Of a DNA stretch of 57,885 nucleotides, positions 5,014-37,433 are shown in pieces. Under the pieces are notes generated by a model. It was not told the DNA's origin. It made no database searches and was given only the letters and a program-made list of their open reading frames with translations. The DNA comes from Perkinsus chesapeaki ATCC PRA-425 (lineage: Eukaryota > Protista > Perkinsozoa), in NCBI GenBank assembly GCA_013115145.1, contig JAAPAO010000173.1, forward strand, positions 1 to 57,885, read 5' to 3'. Position 1 is the stretch's first letter. Every line of letters starts with the position of its first letter. Position numbers and translations under genes: made by a program.

Positions 5014-7679
5014 TCAACTTACTTGTAAGACTTGTTTTAGTTCTAGGCTGTCAGCAACGGCATGGCAAAACTCATACGTACCCAACATAATTGCGCACCC
5101 TGGGATGACCTGAAAGTAGCCTCATTCGTATCTTTCACGCTTCAACCTATGATACCTTCAGCAGTCGCGGTCCCAAGCCAACAGTAAATCCGCGAAGACG
5201 ATACTCCTTAAAAATCGCCACCATAGCGGATCCTGTCGTATGAATCCTAAAAGCCATACCATTCCACTCATCCTTCTCACTGTAAAAAGCGCGCGCCCGG
5301 ATGATCGATTTATCCTACGGTGAGCTCCGTATCGACTTAGATATTGTGTGATATAAATTCGTTTGATGACATGTCCGTCCAATCGAAATGTTCCTCTCCT
5401 TCCATCCCACCTCCGCAACCGACCAGCTACACAGGGGCACCCCAAATCGATCAACTGGGCGCGCTTCTTCACTCACCGTTTTGCCAAGTTGGTTTGTTGC
5501 TTATTGGGCCGACTGGCGGTCTGAAGCTGTGTCTTGACCATATCAAATGGATGTGTTGCAGCAGCTGCAATGGTGCCGCAAACTGCGCCGTTAAGGAAGG
5601 AAAACCCAAAAGTTTCAAGCCAAGTTGCGGGTTGGTTAACCTGAAACAAGTACCAAATATTTTCCGAGGAAAGTGTCCGTAATATAGCCAATGGTAGAAA
5701 TATCGATCCTGGGAATCGAACCCTCGCTGGCTGTAGGAGATGCTCAGATCAAGCCAACGAAGAGGAACATCAGCAACTATTCCCCGTTGTGAAATGTTTT
5801 CTAGCAGACTTCCTTTCATATCCCCGCTCGTGTTGCCGTCGCGCCACATGTATCCCGTCTTGCGAGAACGATCGATTCCCCGAATCTTTCAAAACAGGTG
5901 TCATAAAACAAGCTGAATTCTCCAAAGCAATGACTTCAGTAGTATATTTTTTGTTATGATCTTTCGACGACGCGCTTTTACTAAATCGACTTGATATTTT
6001 TCCAATTATACTTAACGATCAGAGAGTCACTTGCCTTCACAAATGCGTTCTTCGGAGATTGAAGTCTTCCTAGTGCTGAGATATAATGTAAATTCAATAC
6101 CTCTGGTGGAAATGCACAGATACCGCGCTACTTGCAGAGTCGCTAAGATTCCACGTGCTCAGTAACTACAATGTGGATTTGACCTTGGGTGACCAAACTT
6201 GCGCGATCGCCCTTCTTCCAGGTTGTCTGCGATATTATATACTCCAGCATGGTCATCTCAATTGGTCATGCTCTCCAAAACCCGCATGACCGTCGTGCTT
6301 TGGAAAATACTCAAATAGACTAGAGAACAGCCTTCTTACTCGCTTCATAACGATAGTGTAGGCATCAAAGGTCTTCCCAATTTAACCCCACAAATATCCT
6401 TCCCAATTTAACCTTTGAAGTATCTTTCCCTATTCAACCTCTAAAGTATCTTTCCCTATTTAACCTCTAAAGTATCTTTCCCTATTTAACCTCTAAAGTA
6501 TCTTTCCGCATTTAACCTCTAAAGTAGCGTTCCCCATTTAACCTCTAAAGTATCCTTCCCTATTTAACCTCTAAAGTATCTTTCCCTCACTACATTAGCC
6601 TGCTTCTCAGCCAGTTCCAGCAGTTCTTCATTATTAGCATACCTCGCCGCTCCACGCCGTTCCACGTGTTCCGGGAGGAATATCTTTTTATTGTACTCGT
6701 AGAGTGACCAATAAATTGCAGAAAATGGCAAGTCCCTGGGGAAGAACAGAAACCATCAAATGGAGTCGCGCACTACCAGCTCGCGGATGTAATACGAAAA
6801 TATACAATGGAAAATGACCGAAAGGTGATCAGTTAGAATCAAGAAAAGTTTACTTTCTATAGGCTCAAACAAACGAAGCGGTGGAGGGACTCATGGTAAT
6901 GTGAGGGGCGATAAGCTGTCATTTAAAAGTTACGAAACTGCTCAAGATTCGGAGTGAAATACTAAAGCTTCGTCCGCTGCGAAATTTAATCTCTATTATA
7001 TTCCACAAGAAGCAAGGTTGAAGCTAAGATATCCTTACTACCTAACCAATGTGGGTAGCAATCCACGCCAGAGACTTGAAAAGGAGTCTTCTCGTAGAAC
7101 TCGCTTAACCGTCGCAATGGCACCCTCGCCCATTCCAGTTGTCGCTTGTACACGCGTACGCAGAAACTCCACTGGAGAGGAAATTATTTCATTTGTGAAA
7201 GTGAAGACTTACAAGGAGAAAACAAAGTAACAGCGGTGGCCCGTGCGGCCGCACTGGCTACTCCATCGGGGACTTTTTCGCGCCAGTGCTCATAGAGCAC
7301 GAAAAAGGTCTGAGGAATATGTTAGGTTGAAGCCTGCAAGATGCAAAATAGGTTGTGTACCCAGTTAGACGGTATTTGGTATACTAGGCTTGTGACTGTC
7401 CCGTTCCATAAGGCTCGCCAACCGTAAGTGCTTTTAATATGTCGCATCACCTGCAAGCCGGTAGTATTCGTTCGCTGATGATTCAGAGCCGGCGAGGCCT
7501 AAAAATATCTTAGCTCCATCCAAGTAAGATAAAGAGCAGGTTAGATCGAGATGCCCTACCTGCCAGTAGTTCTTGACTACATCAAAGGGAGTACAAACAG
7601 CCGTGACGGCAACCGATCCCATTGTAGAGGCCACCATTGTGTACCAGAAGGTCGCCTTTTCGCCATCTGGCACACTCAT
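5014..7679 (-). CDS. Mitochondrial carrier (SLC25A39/40, MTM1-like), multi-exon
   Basis: Three carrier signatures PFDVVK, PLEFLR and PFDMVK, plus WRALWNG, LWRGLLPTLVR and GLGPRLLK-VIPGCAIMLGTYE. ATG at 7679. Introns resolved at 7499-7559, about 7310-7360, about 7166-7206, 5427-5476, 5280-5318 and 5110-5155. The segment between about 5640 and 7040 is unresolved and the last exon may extend past 5014. Confidence 0.9.
6375..6587. repeat. 26-bp minisatellite (AGTATCTTTCCCTATTTAACCTCTAA)n in a carrier intron
   Basis: About 7-8 tandem copies read directly from the sequence. Confidence 0.9.
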
Positions 7680-25733: not shown

Positions 25734-27211
25734 CTAGTATACTGTAGTTCTCTTCTTTTCAGATGACCGCTTCTTCTTTTCAGATGACCGCTTCTTCTTT
25801 TCAGATGGCTGCTGTTTCGTAACTACCCTTCTTGGCTCAGAGCAATATGACTGTTCTGTGAGACTTTCTACTCCCAAAAAAATAACAATCCACTTTTCCT
25901 TCATTGACAGACCGTTCCCATTGACGGCGCTGAGGTATGCTAGAAAAGATGTTACTAAAGTGAGCACGTATTCTCAAAAATATATTGAATGATTTTATTG
26001 ATGTTATTGAGAATGATTTTTGTTCCAGATTCTTAAATAGTCGGTAAAAAGTTCATGTTCCTTTTTAAGGAGGTCGCCGAGGAACGCACTTGTCACACGC
26101 CGCCTTGCCGAACGTTTGGCTTGCTGAGCGAGAGAACGAAAGATTCGAATGACTGGAATAACATTTTAACAGCGTAAGAATAAACAATATAATCGATCGA
26201 CTGGAATAACATTTTAACAGTGTAAGAATAAACAATATAATCGATCGNNNNNNNNNNNNNNNNNNNNNNNNNNNNNNNNNNNNNNNNNNNNNNNNNNNNN
26301 NNNNNNNNNNNNNNNNNNNNNNNNNNNNNNNNNNNNNNNNNNNNNATAATCGATCGACTGGAATAACATTTTAACAGCGTAAGAATAAACAATATAATCG
26401 ATCGACTGGAATAACATTTCACTCTATTTCATTGACCAACTAAAAATAGTTGTCTCCAATGTACCTCAAATTGTTATATACGAAACGAAAACAATGAGCA
26501 ACATTCGATCTGGCCTGTTTCCTAGCAATGAGAACGTAAACGGATCATCCTTGTAGAATCTGACAGGAAAACCTCATTCGCATCTTGCGCGCTTCAACCT
26601 AAGATACCATCCAGCAAACTGATAAGAAACTTTCGTATCTTTCTATCTCATAAAGATATTTTTTCCTCACCTGATAATAAGGGCTCAACTTGAACTGTAG
26701 GGAACGGTACTAGTGACAGCGTTGCGTACCTATGGAAAGGAATCTTTGCGCATGCGTGCAGATTATTTCTTACCAACTAATTTTGCCGTCAGGATGGATA
26801 ACACTAACACCTTGACACTGAGAATCGGAGACGTCAAGAGAGGGAGGACGTCTCCTTGGTGTTCTGCAAAATATCCTCATGTTGAGCGTGCAAGATACAA
26901 AATAGGTCACCTCATCTGCTGGGGTACACCAAGCTTCTTCTCATCGTGAAAAGATGCTGAATTCACTTCCGAGCCAATCGGTCTGAAATTATATGCTCCT
27001 ACTAACTATCCTTAACATTAAAGAAAAGATTCATAAAATAATTAACCTTACGTCGATGTGCTTCGACTCGAGCCCTCAAAATGGTCTAATAAAACCTGTT
27101 AGGAGACAGTATGACACAGAAATCTGCACGCATGCGCAAGGATACCGTTTCGTGAAAGTCTGCCGCCAACGCAGTCGGGGGTTTCTTTTTCTTTTTCGAT
27201 GACGAAGTCAT
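25734..27211 (-). CDS. Hypothetical multi-exon protein (model uncertain)
   Basis: Chain of short exons (MTSSSKKKKKPPTALAADFHET; DEKKLGVPQQMRTPRRRPPSLDVSD) separated by GT-AG introns carrying the dispersed units. Whether 25734-25967 is the last exon is not established. Confidence 0.35.
26150..26420. repeat. 48-bp tandem repeat spanning an assembly gap (N run about 26248-26345)
   Basis: Unit AATCGATCGACTGGAATAACATTTTAACAGCGTAAGAATAAACAATAT is present on both sides of the gap. Confidence 0.9.
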
Positions 27212-28195: not shown

Positions 28196-29534
28196 TTTTC
28201 GGATTCGGAACGCTCAGCATTGGAAAATGCAATCAGGAAAGTGATGCAAGAAAAACAATTTCATCCGACGAATTACCGTCGAAGTCAAAAACCAGGATAA
28301 GATTCGCGATTTAGTAAACCATAAAAAATCAGAGTATTCGCAAGAAGTTCGATTGCGTAAAATCTCCAAAGGACAAAACATTTTCTGTCCAAGCGGAGTA
28401 TAGAAAAAAGGTAATCCGAACTTCCCATTCATTTAGTTACATTAGTAACCAAATATGTATATAAGTTACTACTACATAACTACTGTTACTATTAACTACT
28501 AATACTATAATAACTATCTGACTGACAGTTACAAGTTAATACGTACACATATTAAGTTGTGTTTTTCTACTTGAAAGATTATGTATATTCTTATTCGCAC
28601 TGGAAAAATAAGCTGTTCCTTACCTGTTATGCACACTGGCGACGATAACGACGGACATCAGATTTTACAGAGGACCTAAAAACGTACTCACCGGGGATCG
28701 AACCCACGACCTTTAAAGAGACGGAATTTCTTTATATGGATTTGTACTCAGTATCTAGTCGGAAGCATTATAGTGTCATTAGTCGTGATGATATCGAATC
28801 CCCAAGAGGTTAAATTAAGCTAGGACACCCAAGGTAGCTTCGGAAATATATAGATTTCGTTCGAGACTGTCGAAATCAGACATCCCGAGAAATCTATGAG
28901 TAACAAAAAATATCGATTATAGTGGGGTATCCGGCCTGTCTCATGGCGTAGGCAGAATTCTACCGCGGATCAATCTGATATGACAACTACCTGAACCCGC
29001 CCCAGCGACGCCCCTATACTGGTCGAAGGGGACAGGTTGCACAAAAAGAAGAGAAATTATGACAATCTCGCGACGATATCACAGTAAAATTAGAACGATT
29101 GACCAGCCAACTAGCTCAACAGTGGGAGCCGGCTCGATTGGGAGGAACCAAAAAGTAATCATTTGTATCAAGGCGATTGGGAACCTCTATTTCTCTTCAG
29201 TGATATAAAAATAGGTGGTGGAAAAGGAAAGGATATTGGCAAGCAATTCATCAATCTAACTAGATTCTAAACCGCCCTCTAAACGCGTGCAGATTGTGAC
29301 AGTTCCAGTTTTTGATTCCGGGCGAGCGAGATTTTCAGCAGTCACATGACAGTTTATATCAGTATCGTAAAAAAGTTGTTCTCACAAAATATCAAGCCCT
29401 AGCTCTTTCTCGTCAGTAGTTTATGCTCAAAAGTGTAGAGGTCGTATTATTTTGTGAGGGGGTTTATATCAACAATTTTAGTGTGGAACAATCACTCCAT
29501 TGAAATATATTTATATATTTCAGAGCAACTCAAT

Positions 29535-31750
29535 CATCAAACATGCCTACGCACTGAGTTAGTCCGGCAATAGTGACTTGTGGTATATCCTCTTCATCAG
29601 TAATAATCCTGAGATACTAATCGATCACGTGATCGATTTAGAAATAGTTTACCTGATCTTAACGAATTTGTTTCGACTAGAATGTCGAGGCGGTGTCTTT
29701 CCGGCCACATCGCTATCGGCGACTTTGCGCGGTTTCAAACGGGAAGACTCAGCAAGTAAGGACGACCTGAAAATGTATCTTAGGTTCAAGCTTGCAGTTC
29801 ACATTCGAGCCTGAAGATACTCACTTATCGCTGGCACTTTCAAATTCATGACGGTCGCCGATTTTACGGCAGCAGCCAGCTATCGGCAAACAACACAGAG
29901 GTTTGGGCCTGAAGGAATCTTAGGTTGAACCGTGCAAGATATAAAACATGTCAAAACATGTCAACTTGTGTCGTTCACATTTCGCGAAGCTTCACAGGAA
30001 TCTCAGCTTGAAGCATGCAAGATGCGCCAGATGTTAAAACGACGCCTTTCTCACCTAACCCCGTGCCTGTCGCCTTCGTCTTCAACAACAATCAGTTTTG
30101 GCCCACATCGCGGTCCTACTTCTCCCTGACCACAAAAATCTTTGCAGTGCGAAAAGATACTCCTCACCTTCGTATCTTTTAAATCACTCACTGAGGGTTC
30201 GATAATCGGGGAGAATGCCATCTTAGAGAACAAAATCTTCAAAGTGTGGAAAGATAAAAAACAGAGACAAATCTTCACAGTGCCGAAAGATACGAAACAG
30301 TGAAAAATCTTCACAGTGCGGAAGAATACGAAACAGTGAAAAATCTTGACAGTGCAGAAGGATACGAAACAGAGAAAAACCTTCACAGTGCGGAAAGATA
30401 CGAAACAGAGACAAATCTTCACAGTGCGAAAAGATACACTTCAAACTCAACTCAGCAACATACTTTAACACACTTCCACGAAATACCTTCATACTTAATG
30501 TCAATGTAAAAAGCGCTCGCCCGATTGATCGATTATTTATTAGTAAAATAAAAAAGGAAATATATAATAATAAAGGCATGCACGTGCGGTAATCCTTTCA
30601 CCCGGGTTCGAATCCCAGCGGCGACATCAATTCAGCGACTTGGACCGTGCAGGGCGATGCATGCCAAAAATTATTATATAAAAACAGCCGATCGATTTAA
30701 TGAAACGGCTAAAAGATATAATTCGCAAATCGATCAAGTGATCGATAAATAGAAGATTAAAATTTACCTGAAAAAATATCTTTTCCCAATTTATCAAGTT
30801 TGGTTTACCTCATGAAGTTGAACGCCTCGGACGGGCGCCGGTAGTGAAAGAATCGACTAAAATCCTGAAGAAGACGGAATCGATCACGCGATCGATTATA
30901 CTTCATACTTGATGATCTGGAATTTTGAGATTTCTAATTAAGCATTCATTCGGCCTTTCGCCAGCGGGGAGATGTGTTACTAGTGCTTTAGCGTCCTCTT
31001 TAAAGGGAGTCCTCCTAATGGCAACTCTACCAGTTCTTCCTCATTGCGACTAGGGATAGATACCTCCGCAAAGATCCCAAGCGCAACGCACTGTGAAGAA
31101 TTATATAACTCTGCACGCATGCGCAATTCAGCGCCTCCCAAATGGCAACTACAGGAGCCCTTTTAGGAAAAACCTGTGAAATTGGATTCTATTTTCTAAT
31201 GAAAGATAAGCTAATCACAGACTTTGCAACTCGCAAATGTCGCAACGACTTCGTATATCAATTACATGCCAGGGGTGTCTTCCCAACACAAAAAATTTGC
31301 ACGCATGCGCATGCGGCACAATTCCAAATATGCGTTTCATTCAGCTGTTCAAAACGCGAGTTCTCGGACATGGCCACTCTGTCGGCGAGCCAATCCCATG
31401 GAAGCTCACCCACGGCGGTCTCAAACTTTTTAAAAAGGACACTAAGTCATCAAATAAGGGGACAGACTACACAATCATCTTGCACGCATGCGCAAGTGCA
31501 ACCTGTTTGAACAGATCAGAAAAATGTTGTGAATTATTTTGCGAGATTTGTCGTTGCAAAATATCTGTGAAAGTTCGACCATTTCTCGCACTGTGAAGAT
31601 TTCCGATCTTACTCGACTCGTCGTTTCTCAGTTGGTGTCCTCGCCGAATTCGATCGATTTCGAATCACCAAAGCAGGCAATCTGAACATCTCCGATCCAC
31701 TAAAAACAGATAAATACAAAAATGCCAAACATGGAACAATTTTACAGCGG
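29535..31750 (-). CDS. Hypothetical multi-exon protein (model uncertain)
   Basis: The last exons splice in phase (..HEFESASDK/SSLLAESSRLKPRK..NKFVKIR/IITDEEDIPQVTIAGLTQCVGMFDD*). Upstream exons and start are not resolved. Confidence 0.35.
30231..30438. repeat. 36-bp minisatellite with core AAATCTTCACAGTGCGAAAAGATAC
   Basis: About 6 degenerate copies plus an isolated copy near 30137-30162. It produces the spurious repetitive ORFs in the track. Confidence 0.85.
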
Positions 31751-31819
31751 AGCGTTGCATTCATCAACAACGATAACGGTCCTTCTGCTTGAAGCGAGAG
31801 ATGCATCCTAAAAGGAACA

Positions 31820-32062
31820 GTATCTTTACGCACTATAAAGATTTTATTCGGTATCTTTACGCACTATAAAGATTTAATTCGGTATCTTTAAGCACTATAA
31901 AGATTTAATTCGGTATCTTTACGCACTATAAAGATTTTATTCGGTATCTTTACGCACTATAAAGATTTAATTCGGTATCTTTACGCACTATAAAGATTTT
32001 ATTTGGTATCTTTACGCACTATAAAGATCTTATTTGGTATATTTACGCACTATAATGATTTA
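31820..32062. repeat. 31-bp minisatellite (GGTATCTTTACGCACTATAAAGATTTTATTC)n
   Basis: About 8 tandem copies read directly. Confidence 0.95.
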
Positions 32063-32962
32063 TCCCACTCACATTCAAAGAAGATCGCCTTCTCATCATT
32101 TTCGTTTTTATTTCCGCGAGGGGCAGAGTCGGCACGAAACTCGATGATGGCATTACAGATGAAAAACAGTTAACCTCAAAAATATCTTAGCGCTCCCTCA
32201 TGAGGCATATCTTAGCTTAAAGCGCGTAAGATACAGAAAATGTCACTCCCTCGCCTACTGTATACACCAGAATTTTCACGACAAAGATAAAAAATGCGAA
32301 AATAAATTTGACACGATACACACAAAACATAGTTCCGTATGTCTCTTTATTTGATGCTCGCATCAACCTAAGATTCTCTCAGAAGTAATGCACTTGATTT
32401 TCTCAGTTAAAGATGTTAAGAAAATTTCTCAACGTCTTTAAAGAAATATGTTTATATGTTTGTATATATAATTCATTTCTTAAAGGAATAATTAAAGTAT
32501 TCTTCCAACAGTGTTGTTCATCCTGCGTCACGAAAAAGGCCACGTGCTCCTAGATTGAAAGATATAATGGAAACCTGACTTCCGAAAGACTATTCCCGAA
32601 CAATTTTTCCCAAATTTTTCCGAAATTTTTCCGAAATTCTTCTGAATAAGTACCCCAGCGCTGTCCCATTCGCACAATATCAAAGCAAAGCAGTCATTAA
32701 ATTATTTCCAAAAATGTTTAAACGAATAAATTGCCCTGAAGTAATATTTCAACAGATTGCCAATTGAAATCTCAACTCAACACATTCGATCATTTTAATA
32801 CTACTAGAGCGCCGACCAGCGAAATGAAAGAATAATAACGTGCACAAACAGTAGGTCGAGCAGTGATATAAACAACGTATCTTTTATCGATCACCTGATC
32901 GATTTGAACCAGCAAAACCAATCAAACCAACTTCATCATCTCTACACAGTCTCCTTATGAAT

Positions 32963-35950
32963 TTAATACTCATCAACTGCACATTCGGGAGTCGGTTCTT
33001 CCCGCCTTTCGATCGGTTTGGTCATTTGGGGCGGAGCGGCTTCGTTGGTGAGAAGCTCGAGATCGAGTGCTCCGTCATGCTTTACAATATGCTCTGAAAG
33101 GCAGTAGCTGACCCATTATGTATCGTGCATGCTTCAACATAAGATATTTCAAGCGACACAGTTGAATAAACCGAAAAAACTAGAATAGCCTCCCTCAACT
33201 ATCAAATCGATCACGTGATCGATTATCACTCACCGAGCGATTCCGTCAACAACTGAATCTCATTTCCTAACTGCGTCAGATCAGGTTTCAACAGAAACTT
33301 CACAGACTTCATCCTGATCGAAACACAAATCGATCAACTGGGCGCGCTTTTCACTCACCAACTGTTCGCAGTTCTCCTCGTGGGAATGTTGCCAAGCGTG
33401 ACTCTCATCAAAGCCTCACGCTCATGCGGGGAATCTCCAATAGAGATAACGTTCCTCCACGACCTGAGGAAATATCTTAGCTCGAAGCGTGCAAGGTACA
33501 CAATAGCTCAACTCGTACCTATGCATAGCCGAGCTGTTCCAAAAATTAACCGCTGTGCTTGACGGTTGCTCAAGAAACTGTGGCCCACTCCCACTAACAG
33601 GCGTCGCACCTTGGAATTCATAATCGATCGCGTGATCGATTTGGATACTCACATCTCTGACCGTCAATGATATCCCTAAAAGCATGTGCCTTCCACCCCG
33701 CCGGGCTTTTTATTCCCGTATGCTCAAACGCACCTAAAATGACAACAAAATCTTGCAATCTTGCTCTTCCTTCCATTTCCTCAACGCAGAAAACCCTGTT
33801 CCGCCTACTTCTAGCACTGCAAATCTGAACTGCCAAATCTTGCAAAAGTGGCTCCAACGAGGGAAGCCATTTTCGGCAGGAAAGTTCAAACCATCCATCC
33901 TGAGGGAAAAATATTTTTCGCGGAAAAAATCTCAGTTTTTTTCTCAGGAAAAATTTATTGAATAATTTTTACATAATTTTTCCAAGAAAAAAATACCGAA
34001 ATTTAAAAAAATAATTCCGGTCAAGTAATTCAACTGTCTCCAATACTCGTCCCCAAGAAAGGAACAATTTTCCCGGAAATTTTCCGGGAAAATTTGGGAT
34101 TTTTTTTCATACCAGAAATGCTATACATCATATTTCCATGCACGCATTGAAAACATCACTTCGCGTTTCAGATTTACTTTTTTAATTTTCCAGAAATTTT
34201 CCGAAAAATTTCCGAAAATTTTCCGAAAATTTTCTGCTCACCTGCGCGTTTGTAACAATGACGACCTTCCCCAACGAAGCGGCAACGCGGACCATCTTAG
34301 CCGCCATTTCAGCGAGCTCTGCCAAAGGGTCGATGAACTGCTCAGGTACGAACGGATCGCAAACCTAAATAAATCCGTGAAACGAAACTCGCTTCGCTCC
34401 GCTAGAAAATGCTTCTCTATTGTGGATACAATGCGAAAATGAACAGCTTCGATTCGTTTTTTTCAATGGGAAAGTTGCAATGAATACACTTGCGAGCATA
34501 TAGAAATGTGCAAAACATCTCCGGCAGATTTTTAGGCGAATTCGGAACTTCTCGCGGATGTGAAAATTATTGAGAGCAGAAAGATTTCGCGGAGGTTGAA
34601 TTCCCGAAAAACAAGATTTGGCTGAACAAATTCAAGAGAGATCCAGAGCGGTTAAAGTATTAAGGGCACTGGCAGGCTCGGAAAAACTTAGGAAGAAAAA
34701 ACGCTTCGCTCCGCCTTACGTTCAATCCATTTAATTTCGCCCAAGTGGTCGGACAAATAGTATCATCCCAATCAAAGATAACCAAAGTCTGAGCTCGAGC
34801 TGGCGTGCCTGAAAGATACTTTTGAGCTCAACTTGCCTGCACCCCTTCTACTTGGTGTGGCAGCACAAGCCTCCTTCAAAGGAGTCGGAGTGGCGCCAAC
34901 TGCAGTACTGAAAAAAAAGAAATTTTTCCACGGAAAAAAATACGAAAATCACCAAGGAGGAATCTGGAATAATTTCAAAAAGGTGAAGAAATGTTTAAAA
35001 AATATATTGTAACATTCAGGGTTCAAATGAGTGAAAAATTATCACACGAATCTTAGGTTGATTCTTGCACCGAACAATCTGAAGCGATTTGAACAGCAGT
35101 AAAATTTATTAAATTTCGAAATCCTAAATGTTCGTGATCGGCGAGCCAACTTGACATTGAGAGACGTAACCCCCGGATGGCATGGGAAAGTTTTGGTAGA
35201 ATTAAACTGGCGAGAGTTCTTCCTTATTGATACCATCCAACTTTTAAAACTCCCCGCTTTACCTTCCATTTGAGATATCCCCTTCTTTCTCCTCTCCAGG
35301 TGTCATAGGTTGATCCGCGTCTTTTTCATCTCGCAAAGATTCCTTTGGTGTCATCATGACTCGACTGCGACTCTCCACATGGGGAAATGTTGCTGTGGGG
35401 AAGTCTGAGAGTAATATCGATCGTTTGATCGATTTCGAACTGACAACGTGTTATACTGCTATGTAGGCCTTTTGGAATATCGATCACGTGATCGATTCAC
35501 AGATCAATAAATTCAACCATACTGTCTCCCTAGACTTATTTTACAATATCGATTACTCGATCGATTTGCTCAACCTACAGTTATTCTGATCAGTTCTATG
35601 ATGATCCTCTCCCAGCGGACTCAACACGTCTCGACTCTCATCCTCATCACTTCCGAACACCATCGGGTCTGAATCTAACTCTAGGCATCTACGGGTACCT
35701 GAATCGATCACGTGATCGATTTAGAACAGCTAACCAAGCTAACGGCTTCGGCATATCCTAGGTCCGACCTTGCAAGACGAATAGAACTCCAATCAAAAAG
35801 GAATATAAAACATATCTTAGCTCGAAGCGTACAAGATACAAGATAGCTCAATTCCCTACCTCTCCCCGGAACAGGTGTACTCTGCTGAAGATCTTCCATC
35901 GAAATCGGTTGCTCCTCATCAATTGATTTTTCCTCGCCGGCAAACATGCA
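32963..35950 (-). CDS. HAD-like DWDDT-family protein (type seen in alveolates and oomycetes), multi-exon
   Basis: Spliced motifs in order: TLVIFDWDDTICPTTW, GKVVIVTNA, GWFELSCRKWLP, ICSAR, WKAHAF, NVISIGDSPHEREAL, KSVKFLLKP, EHIVKHDGALDL. Introns at 33610-33652, 33464-33518, 33314-33358 and 33094-33233. The 5' part (34900-35950) is micro-exonic and unresolved. Confidence 0.75.
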
Positions 35951-36018
35951 AAACCAATCACCACCCAAAACTACAAATCGATCACGTGATCGATTTCACC
36001 AAACCCAACCCATCATTC

Positions 36019-37296
36019 TCAAGAAACCTTTCCAATCCGTCTCAAAGGCGCCCGCAAACTACACTTCATCGCAGCCCACTCAGCGCGCCCTCCCTCATGT
36101 TCCCATTCAAATCTGTGCGTCGCTCCGCTAAATTGTGTTGCATGTTTCACATTTTCCTTCGACACTATCGTAACGATCGCCGACGGCATTTCCCCCAATT
36201 TTATTTTTCTAACATGGACGACTTTCCATCCTTCGACAAGCGAATCTTCCACGATTTCAACCAGATCCTCTTTTGTCAGAAGCACCTAAAAAAGCTATAC
36301 CAAATCGATCAAGTGATCGATTATTACCATAACACCCTCTCGTCTGCAAACCCTGCCAAATTCGGCCAACGTTCGCCGATAAATATCTTCCAATTTCTCA
36401 GGGTCTCCCGCGCACCATTGAACTCCAAACGGCAGGTCCGAAATTATCAAATCAAAAATATCTTTTCGGAAATTCAACCTCCGCGAATCTTCCAAGATTC
36501 CATCCACTTTCGCATCCGCAAGAAAATCCAAATTCGCCAAAAATTTCGTCATCTGTTGCCGACTAGAATCGCTTCCGATCGCCCAACTCCCTCCACTCCG
36601 CTCAAAAATCGTCGCGCCAGTTCCACAGAACGCATCCAAAACAGTCAGGTTACCAATTTCTTGCGCGCCACAAATTTCTGTTATGAACCTTGCTTGCCTA
36701 TTCATCGCCCAGGCCACAGGACCAGAGAGACCAACACATTTTCGCTCGCCCGATTGATCGATTCGAACCATCACGGGAATATCAATAATAATCCAATCAT
36801 CATTCATAAATATCCTCACCACAACCTGCGGTTTAGGGGAAACTCGCGCTTGCCACGTTTTCAACCTCTCGGGTATCATGCACGCTGCAAGCTTAGATAC
36901 GTCAAATGACGATATCGATGCGAATCTCTTCCCTTTCCTCTGAGTTTCGACCTTGAAATCGATCACCTGATCGATTTTCGCATCCATCGCCGTTCTCACT
37001 TTCTCATCGACTCCTTCCCAATCTACACCATCCAAATAATCGCGTATCTTTTCATGTGGATAATCCTCGCTTGAAGCTTCGCATAAAAGATTCAAACAAA
37101 TCTTTTCCTGCAATTTTATATCCGACTTCAATATTTCAGTCAAATCGCCATCGAAATAAATTCTCTGTCGAGGTCCGGAAAAAATTATTTTTTCCGAATT
37201 TATTTTTTCCCGGATTTCCCAAAGCGCACGCGTGCTCATTCCAACACCTGTGCTAAACGTCGAACAAAACTGCGATGTAATACGAGGAGCTGGCAT
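36019..37296 (-). CDS. THUMP-domain SAM-dependent RNA methyltransferase (THUMPD2/THUMPD3-like)
   Basis: THUMP-like FKVETQRKG..WQA..IPV, then VAWAM, motif I VLDAFCGTG, motif IV-like IISDLPFG and EFGRVCRREGVM/VLLT. The last join is a 42-nt intron at 36286-36327. Confidence 0.85.
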
Positions 37297-37433
37297 GAAA
37301 TAAAGCTAATCAAAATCGATTACGCGATCGATTTGCCCAATTATCATCAACACAAAACACTTCTCATCCAACACCTAGTAAATTTCGTTAAAAAAACATA
37401 TCCAAGCTCCAAGCATGCAAAGTACAAAATAAC

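Follow-up and report, generated by a model that had tools for sequence, protein, structure and literature searches.

A dispersed palindrome in genes and micro-introns of Perkinsus chesapeaki as a putative dyad-symmetric recognition site

Palindrome copies and their gene context

We analysed a 57.9-kb stretch of DNA from Perkinsus chesapeaki ATCC PRA-425, referred to here as the window. It contains a real palindrome of 18-22 nt in 14 copies, all of them within positions 29620-37332 (7.7 kb); the rest of the window holds no further copy. The copies and the features around them are as follows, with the 18-mer core of each copy starting at the first coordinate given for that copy; the GT..AG brackets around the copies are on the minus strand.

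29620-29637, unstranded: palindrome copy with centre ACGT, in a candidate minus-strand GT..AG bracket at 29609-29652 (44 nt)
30729-30746, unstranded: palindrome copy with centre AAGT, in a candidate minus-strand bracket at 30709-30767 (59 nt)
30879-30896, unstranded: palindrome copy with centre ACGC, in a candidate minus-strand bracket at 30865-30908 (44 nt), with a pyrimidine tract ahead of AG
32886-32903, unstranded: palindrome copy with centre ACCT, in a weak 29-nt bracket at 32881-32909; possible gene end or untranslated region
33199-33233, minus strand: candidate 35-nt intron with GTGAGT donor and palindrome at 33206-33223, flanked by 34 and 36 open codons
33315-33358, minus strand: 44-nt intron of a second family, made up of donor, AAAAGCGCGCCC, N4 and GATCGATT, with one palindrome half-site
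33610-33652, minus strand: 43-nt GT..AG intron with GTGAGT donor and palindrome at 33623-33640; 105 and 61 open codons flank it after removal
35416-35565, unstranded: palindrome triplet within 150 nt (35416-35433, 35479-35496 and 35548-35565), each copy in a possible 32-52-nt minus-strand bracket
35699-35734, minus strand: candidate 36-nt (or 29-nt) intron with palindrome at 35703-35720; 89 and 47 open codons
35977-35994, unstranded: perfect 22-mer copy between a stop codon and the next ATG
36286-36327, minus strand: 42-nt GT..AG intron of a THUMP-type methyltransferase gene, with palindrome at 36304-36321; joins ...EGVM to VLLTKEDL...
36328-37296, minus strand: exon 1 of a THUMP/UPF0020-type RNA methyltransferase gene, host of three copies
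36958-36975, unstranded: palindrome in methyltransferase exon 1, in frame and translated IDQVID, with no usable GT..AG around it
37315-37332, unstranded: palindrome whose position 7 is T; the methyltransferase ATG (37296) lies 18 nt downstream, and TTTGATTAG follows the copy on the minus strand

The original prediction had placed 14 copies in this region and had described them as containing GATC, ATCGAT and CACGTG; all 14 were found, with core starts within a few nucleotides of the predicted positions, and all three words are present. Two of the brackets it proposed, 33610-33652 and 36286-36327, are exact on the minus strand, and the second of these is a well-supported intron. A third, put at about 35698-35733, is refined to 35699-35734, and a fourth, put at about 35966-35994, does exist as a 29-nt GT..AG bracket but at 35971-35999, where the flanking frames give it no support. 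The claim that the palindrome fills micro-introns is correct for some micro-introns and not for every copy: 36958 is exonic and in frame, and 37315 and 35977 lie just upstream of ATGs (in the latter case the methyltransferase exon-2 frame stops about 25 nt before the copy, and ATG 35947 follows 29 nt after it). Placement upstream of start codons was rejected as a general rule (6 sense versus 5 antisense).

Ten frames of the minus strand (29.6-35.9 kb) had no Pfam match, and gene models there stay candidates. Word searches with the frames 33425-33709 and 35711-35995, which read through or end in palindromes, likewise gave no match. Antisense frames are long in this region, so that the longest spanning open reading frame is uninformative on exonic copies.

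Abundance, spacing and constraint in the genome

Exact ATCGATC..GATCGAT arms are found in 12 of the 14 window copies, the other two (35548 and 37315) having T at position 7; within the triplet, ATT follows each copy. Dinucleotide shuffles of the window yield 0.00 matches to the 22-mer (up to three mismatches) and 0.28 to the 18-mer (up to two mismatches). Genome-wide, ATCGATC-N4-GATCGAT has 357 exact copies on hundreds of contigs, compared with 0 for a reversed-pattern control; ATCGAT-N6-ATCGAT occurs 443 times (6 in the reversed control), and sites with no more than one mismatch number 472 (3 in the control). The density is about one palindrome per 90 kb (~470 copies in 41.7 Mb), with local clustering: a neighbour within 5 kb was present for 14 of the first 50 listed sites, against an expectation of about 10%. 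The 60-nt flanks of the window copies have a mean identity of 26% (maximum 50%), and no long direct repeats joining these copies were found. The window copies are all confined to 7.7 kb. Even so, given the counts in shuffles and control, the hundreds of contigs and the unrelated flanks, the probability that chance at this base composition or a duplication limited to one locus has produced the palindrome is close to nil; both of these explanations, named with the original prediction as refuting conditions, are contradicted.

We found that the palindrome reads as three abutting palindromic hexamers (ATCGAT, CACGTG, ATCGAT), and its half-site, T-GATCGAT-T, is present as two inverted copies around a variable 4-nt centre. 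The arm hexamers and the consensus centre are each palindromic on their own, which a hairpin would not need. Variation is about 0.8% per position in the hexamer arms, about 8% at positions 7 and 12 and about 15% in the centre, which deviates from the consensus in about half of the copies; 14 positions are near-invariant, and 65 of the 472 one-mismatch sites deviate solely at positions 7/12, with about 50 further single-sided variants in the arms. Spacing is equally strict. Among 742 ATCGAT pairs at spacings of 0-30, 443 have the N6 spacing and about ten fall at each other spacing (control, about six per spacing), and in sampled genome stretches (78 unique copies) the N6 spacing was seen in 51/59. 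Neither this sample nor the genomic one-mismatch count revealed a decay spectrum of degraded copies. Flank positions ±1 and ±2 have an A/T consensus. A further flank asymmetry, an apparent downstream TTGG bias, was rejected as a signal, as the G:C ratio of the coding strand accounts for it.

The half-site is also used alone. Solo GATCGATT occurs 20 times in the window, where about two are expected, and GCGCCC-N4-GATCGATT has 98 copies in the genome (0 in the control), with no partner arm there. Within this second intron family the half-site always points the same way with respect to the donor, at a distance of 15-24 nt from the acceptor; the donor is part of the repeat, which brings the family nearer to the introner pattern than the palindrome is.

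Cross-species evidence at the locus comes from one orthologous protein (P0001, 57% identity), read through an intron and compared at two sites. At the positions of the exonic copy (36958) and the intronic copy (36304), P0001 reads IDHVIDF and IDHVIDL. Both copies that can be compared are thus present in P0001, and there is no recent lineage-specific gain at those two sites. The distance from palindrome to donor differs by 3 nt between the two genes; centre and offsets have changed, and the arms have stayed constant. This suggests old insertions with arms held constant and not recent spread.

We found no paper describing the motif. A metagenome scan with the 20-mer gave two unrelated chance matches only, one of which falls in the reading frame of a bacterial sulfur-oxidation cytochrome gene, at its end.

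Mobile-element and pre-mRNA explanations

If the palindrome were a selfish or relic mobile element (introner, MITE-like element or Rickettsia-type palindromic insertion), it would have spread among introns and, now and then, exons, and would owe its uniformity to gene conversion or to what its mobilising or homing enzyme requires, and not to a host function. Hundreds of dispersed, near-identical copies with sharp edges and local clustering fit this explanation, as do the copy in frame within a protein-coding exon and the related whole-intron family that includes the donor site. Inverted-repeat introner elements exist, moreover, in Amoebophrya, which belongs to the dinoflagellate lineage; Perkinsus branches at the base of that lineage (PMC7789003; PMC3101222). 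Like the palindrome, these are inverted-repeat sequences with a predicted hairpin in many short introns; however, their 8-20-nt inverted repeats stand at both intron ends and overlap 3-5-nt direct repeats at the junctions, and they are strain-specific and have non-canonical splice sites (PMC7789003). The palindrome has contiguous arms (4-nt centre) and is internal, 4-28 nt from GT and AG; its introns are canonical GT..AG where supported, they lack direct repeats, and a distant orthologue has some of the same copies. Micromonas, Aureococcus, fungal and MITE-derived introners resemble it in that one family occupies introns of unrelated genes. In those families the whole intron and its splice signals are shared over tens to hundreds of nucleotides, often with TIRs/TSDs and recent presence/absence variation, whereas here the 18-22-nt core alone aligns, between unrelated flanks, and none of the remaining introner features is found. 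The palindromic elements of Rickettsia are bacterial, 100-150 bp long and inserted in frame in genes; copy 36958, translated in frame within a conserved enzyme, is like them in this respect but is a single case among 14 copies.

Several further observations make a mobile origin improbable. Target-site duplications are absent, 2-5-nt direct repeats at four assumed boundaries being no commoner than in permuted flanks; the splice sites lie outside the repeat, at offsets of 4 to 28 nt; known transposons are far longer than 18-22 nt; the two copies open to comparison occupy the same positions in the orthologue; and decayed copies do not form a spectrum. Variable offsets and the absence of target-site duplications indicate that this is not an active introner, and together with the sharing of the core alone and the two copies kept in the orthologue they leave the second introner family suggested in the original prediction without support as an active intron-making element.

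An element of the pre-mRNA is possible, though we consider it doubtful. It could take the form of a stem-loop, with a stem of 7-10 bp and a loop of 4 nt, that would control splicing or retention of micro-introns or mark the excised intron, or of a linear branch-region signal, in which the half-site UGAUCGAUU would act 9-30 nt before the 3' splice site and the palindrome would show that signal in either orientation. The position of the copies speaks for such an element. Intron-like brackets are enriched around copies (15/78 versus 4.1% of random positions; in a second comparison, 24/72 copies versus 113/600), and copies gather in short coding-strand GT..AG brackets. The plausible window brackets span 29-59 nt, host introns being generally about 30-60 nt long, and a copy lies 4-28 nt from GT and 4-29 nt from AG. 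Predicted hairpin energies range from -7.3 to -12.4 kcal/mol, with an added outer helix in 2/6 brackets, the centre is variable like a loop, and two copies just before AG upstream of ATG resemble an SL trans-splicing outron. For the linear version, there are the orientation and acceptor distance of the half-site in the second family, and UGAU, which presumably fits the loose yUnAy branch consensus.

The arms, however, are invariant in their letters and do not covary. The check for compensatory changes between arms gave 7 compensated T..A copies against about 3 expected, a weak excess, and 65 single-sided ones. Among single-sided variants at positions 7/12, U·G and C·A numbered 11 and 8, which gives no G·U bias in a small sample (19 confident cases) with strand assigned by GC skew. 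Pairing of the flanks was no more frequent than in permuted sets at ±1 (57 versus 57.4) and ±2 (36 versus 38.2) and less frequent at ±3 (12 versus 20.8). Without covariation, G·U bias or flank pairing, a hairpin defined by structure only does not account for the palindrome. Folding should moreover hinder splicing, because a 22-nt hairpin leaves too little single strand in introns of 29-45 nt. A fold-back that shortens the distance between splice sites, as the original prediction had suggested, finds no support in introns that already measure about 30-60 nt and that lack compensatory or G·U changes and flank pairing. The linear version gives no account of the equally conserved 5' arm, and one of the conserved copies lies in frame in an exon. 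Only about 470-570 introns are carriers, so that the element is not a general splicing signal. A search of window positions 26-40 kb against Rfam returned no match at any palindrome; two sub-threshold hits to miRNA models lie elsewhere in the region.

A putative dyad site in gene bodies

On this evidence the palindrome behaves like a genuine element that is kept by selection and read by its letters; it does not behave as a mobile intron or a plain RNA fold would. Our preferred reading, to which we assign a probability of about 0.45, is that it is a putative dyad-symmetric protein recognition site, old and selectively maintained, most likely on the double-stranded DNA of gene bodies. The putative reader would be a dimeric, sequence-specific protein acting on DNA and recognising the palindrome by its letters rather than by its ability to fold. 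Introns would be tolerant carriers of the site and not its creation: it would lodge mainly in spliceosomal introns of 30-60 nt and occasionally in an exon in frame or just upstream of a start codon, with local clusters like the one in the window (14 sites over 7.7 kb).

Inverted half-sites conserved at a fixed spacing, a variable spacer and independent use of the half-site are as would be expected of a dyad site. Bipartite SPE2 arrays in Plasmodium are bound by a tandem-AP2 protein. In Drosophila, DRE (TATCGATA) and the dual-core CGATA sites of BEAF are clustered dyad or bipartite DNA motifs bound by protein (PMC2605929). Such motifs, like the palindrome, combine inverted or bipartite half-sites at fixed spacing with a variable spacer, solo half-sites and homotypic clusters, and the ATCGAT core resembles DRE, by letters alone. 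AP2 proteins are present in Perkinsus, and dimerisation of AP2 domains on DNA is possible (PMC4117751). These motifs are found at promoters, insulators or subtelomeres, whereas the palindrome is found in micro-introns instead. The original prediction had compared it with HIP1 (GCGATCGC) of cyanobacteria, which is also an iterated short GATC-containing palindrome far above chance. HIP1, an octamer, recurs roughly every kb and does so in both coding and non-coding DNA. Of the three readings offered with that prediction, an iterated DNA site fits best, but the abundance and intron bias of this one, an 18-22-mer in a eukaryote, are unlike those of HIP1.

Some observations count against a DNA site. 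The 14 near-invariant positions are stricter than those of most transcription-factor sites; an RNA fold is predicted (-7 to -12 kcal/mol), and other intron modules of the same genome form hairpins too. Nearly all copies lie in transcribed DNA and the majority in intron-like brackets, and a pure DNA site would predict neither.

Why very short introns are kept, and what role their sequence has beyond the splice signals, is an open question on which the palindrome bears: about 470 introns or near-intron positions with an almost invariant dyad word of 14 positions offer a clean, testable handle. A broader reading, which we regard as unlikely, is that micro-introns of Perkinsus are given over to DNA sites at which architectural or regulatory proteins bind. 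If that were true, the palindrome (a dimer site) and the module of GCGCCC and half-site would be protein-binding cassettes inside genes, many introns would be retained for the site they carry, and clusters such as that in the window would be signs of a chromatin domain under regulation. As a parasite of shellfish Perkinsus has commercial importance, and it is an outgroup to dinoflagellates and apicomplexans; a new class of cis-element in this genus would bear on the evolution of gene regulation and intron content in the whole group.

Palindrome copies in the window and their gene context

We scanned the window with a 22-mer (at most three mismatches) and with the 18-mer core ATCGATC-N4-GATCGAT (at most two mismatches); every palindrome position of the original prediction was recovered by both, and shuffled window sequences never gave more than three matches with either. 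A stricter scan yielded 14 copies, named below by core start, and none in the remaining 50 kb of the window; at 14 in 7.7 kb, this is the densest palindrome cluster seen. Direct-repeat analysis shows that the copies have only about 20-30 nt in common, and local duplication as their origin is ruled out because their 60-nt flanks have a mean identity of 26%. Genes at 29-38 kb are on the minus strand according to GC skew, on which strand assignments are based, and open frames. The palindromes are confined to the 29.6-37.3-kb portion of a low-GC stretch, 26000-48000 (GC 0.37-0.44 vs 0.44-0.49 outside, GC skew strongly negative).

Window copies of the palindrome (a bracket is a GT..AG pair enclosing a copy)
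36304 (-): 42-nt GT..AG intron, 36286-36327, in a THUMP/UPF0020-type RNA methyltransferase gene
33623 (-): 43-nt intron, GTGAGT donor, 105 and 61 open codons on the two sides
33206, 35703: intron brackets supported like 33623, but more weakly
29620, 30729, 30879, 32886 and the trio 35416/35479/35548: candidate GT..AG brackets, 29-59 nt
36958: in frame in methyltransferase exon 1, reading IDQVID; usable splice sites absent
37315: 18 nt upstream of ATG 37296
35977: about 25 nt past the exon-2 stop and 29 nt upstream of another ATG

With 36286-36327 excised, ...EGVM runs straight into VLLTKEDL..., the strand that should follow the catalytic loop (the exons were searched separately). Pfam gave no match on the frames flanking the 29-59-nt brackets, and those flanking 35977 give no support to its 29-nt bracket. 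Sequence alone allows no more than a minority of brackets to be called introns. Among 78 unique copies compared with random positions, 19% (vs 4.1%) have a consensus-like donor and a pyrimidine-tract acceptor at most 30 nt away, and 33% (vs 19%) have both flanks open with read-through blocked. Thus, the short-intron bias of the palindrome is real. Introns of P. marinus are canonical GT/AG and 39-1622 bp long, the majority under 100 bp (PMC3101222).

Genome-wide counts, variation and age

The assembly spans 41.7 Mb in 3544 contigs, and its contig C802 is the window.

Sites genome-wide, with reversed control
Exact ATCGATC-N4-GATCGAT: 357; control 0
ATCGAT-N6-ATCGAT: 443; control 6
At most one mismatch to the 14 specified bases: 472; control 3
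Single-sided variant, T at position 7 or A at position 12: 65; control 0
Double variant T..A (positions 7 and 12): 7; control 1
ATCGAT pairs, every spacing 0-30: 742; control 182

N6 accounts for 60% of ATCGAT pairs at spacings 0-30 and lies about 40-fold above any other spacing. Three palindromic hexamers, ATCGAT, CACGTG and ATCGAT, abut to form the motif. A(A) and T(T) are its usual flanks, and its commonest centre is ACGT. Variation per position is about 0.8% in the two arm hexamers, about 8% at positions 7/12 (transitions almost exclusively) and about 15% in the centre. In a 241-kb genome sample (stretches around 50 loci), almost no copy carries two or more mismatches in its arms, and there is no decay spectrum. 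Among the first 50 sites listed, 14 have a neighbour within 5 kb, vs about 10% under a uniform spread. Full-text searches for the 18-mer, for Perkinsus together with introns and palindromes, and for Perkinsus introners found no published description of the palindrome.

The sole relative from a word search was the orthologue P0001 (57% identity), whose ORF call runs through the intron. The exonic copy reads IDQVIDF in the window and IDHVIDF in P0001, the intronic copy IDHLIDL and IDHVIDL, and the donor-to-palindrome stretch is one codon longer in P0001. From these protein sequences we infer that, at both sites, the arms were retained and the centre and offset altered; the two checked copies would thus be old. 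Part of methyltransferase exon 1 (36640-36977, -) also has in-frame stretches resembling other intron modules. An in-frame hairpin at about 36858-36907 resembles family A, a different hairpin-type intron module of this genome, and is not kept in P0001; RIDQSGERK of exon 1 is retained there as RIDQSGGRK.

A second intron family and neighbouring repeats

A second family is laid out as donor GT(G)AGTG, AAAAGCGC(G)CGCCC, N4 and GATCGATT(T), sharing one half-site (arm) with the palindrome. Its core, GCGCCC-N4-GATCGATT, occurs 98 times genome-wide vs 0 in the control, mostly within a whole-intron family whose repeat includes the donor; no partner arm exists in these copies. Since the donor belongs to its repeat, this family looks more like an introner (an intron-making mobile element) than the palindrome does. 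Solo half-sites GATCGATT outside full sites number 20 in the window, vs about 2 expected.

Second-family copies in the window
5293-5310 (+)
5445-5462 (-)
about 30510-30534 (+)
33315-33358 (-)
36741-36764 (+, antisense): inside methyltransferase exon 1; GCTCGCCC+half-site unit, in frame
37840-37857 (-)

Minisatellites
30196-30473: period 36 nt
31758-32092: period 31 nt
41710-41936: period 20 nt
43823-44048: period 38 nt
45653-46002: period 31 nt

Several of these five have an ATCTT...AAGAT hairpin core, as in family A. A hairpin module of about 40 nt, GTATCTTGCACGC...CTAAGATAC, has at least 20 copies in 26871-47166 in either orientation (families D5, D9, D10, D11 and D13), many being entire short introns. 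B-box-like pieces resembling tRNA 3' halves (GGTTCGAATCC / GGGATCGAACCC type) lie at 28678-28711, 30598-30625, 42461-42494 and 45520-45553; ARAGORN found no tRNA genes in the window. Motif TGCACGCATGCGCA occurs at 27113-27138, 31100-31125, 31286-31311 and 31469-31494, three of them spaced about 185 nt, and it resembles the TGCATGCA-type words that apicomplexan AP2 proteins bind. An N run (assembly gap) at about 26248-26360 lies inside a 48-nt repeat containing CGATCGATTAT. Genome-wide, the Perkinsus-type spliced-leader exon CCATCTTGG occurs in 31 places (e.g. C8:829, C8:7019, C1631:1302), several variants having C-to-T or C-to-A in the first bases; TCTT replaces the dinoflagellate TTTT, as in the Perkinsus form (PMC3101222).

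Readings of the palindrome

Predicted RNA folding of the palindrome is -7.3 to -12.4 kcal/mol, and nothing points to pairing as the selected property. The arms, which the original prediction proposed to check for compensatory change, are invariant and show no covariation. At the sole variable pair (7/12), 65 sites are single-sided vs 7 compensated, with about 3 compensated expected under independence, and U·G is not commoner than C·A on the sense strand (11 vs 8, with strand taken from GC skew where this reached 0.1). An A/T consensus marks flank positions ±1 and ±2, yet they do not pair more frequently than in permuted sets, and pairing at ±3 is rarer than in such sets. Every arm is palindromic in its own right, a property that a hairpin would not require, and half-sites also occur on their own, in the window and in the second family. 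A downstream TTGG preference proved only apparent, being matched by the coding-strand G:C ratio of 1.37.

A role at the RNA level, as a regulatory hairpin or with the half-site as a branch-region signal, is rather unlikely; what speaks for it is the intron bias, the half-site's fixed orientation within the second family, and hairpins as a theme of other intron modules. An introner was rejected on account of splice sites outside the repeat, variable offsets, the absence of target-site duplications at palindrome copies and the apparent age of the checked copies. The introner elements of Amoebophrya are unlike the palindrome: they carry inverted repeats at their ends and direct repeats at the junctions, use non-canonical splice sites and are strain-specific (PMC7789003). 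A selfish palindromic relic is improbable, and chance is negligible. Some weight is left for a reading we have not considered. Our leading and still tentative reading (probability roughly 0.45) is that the palindrome may be a dyad-symmetric site recognized by its sequence. Its reader would probably be a dimeric protein bound to double-stranded DNA, and micro-introns would be the carriers of the site.
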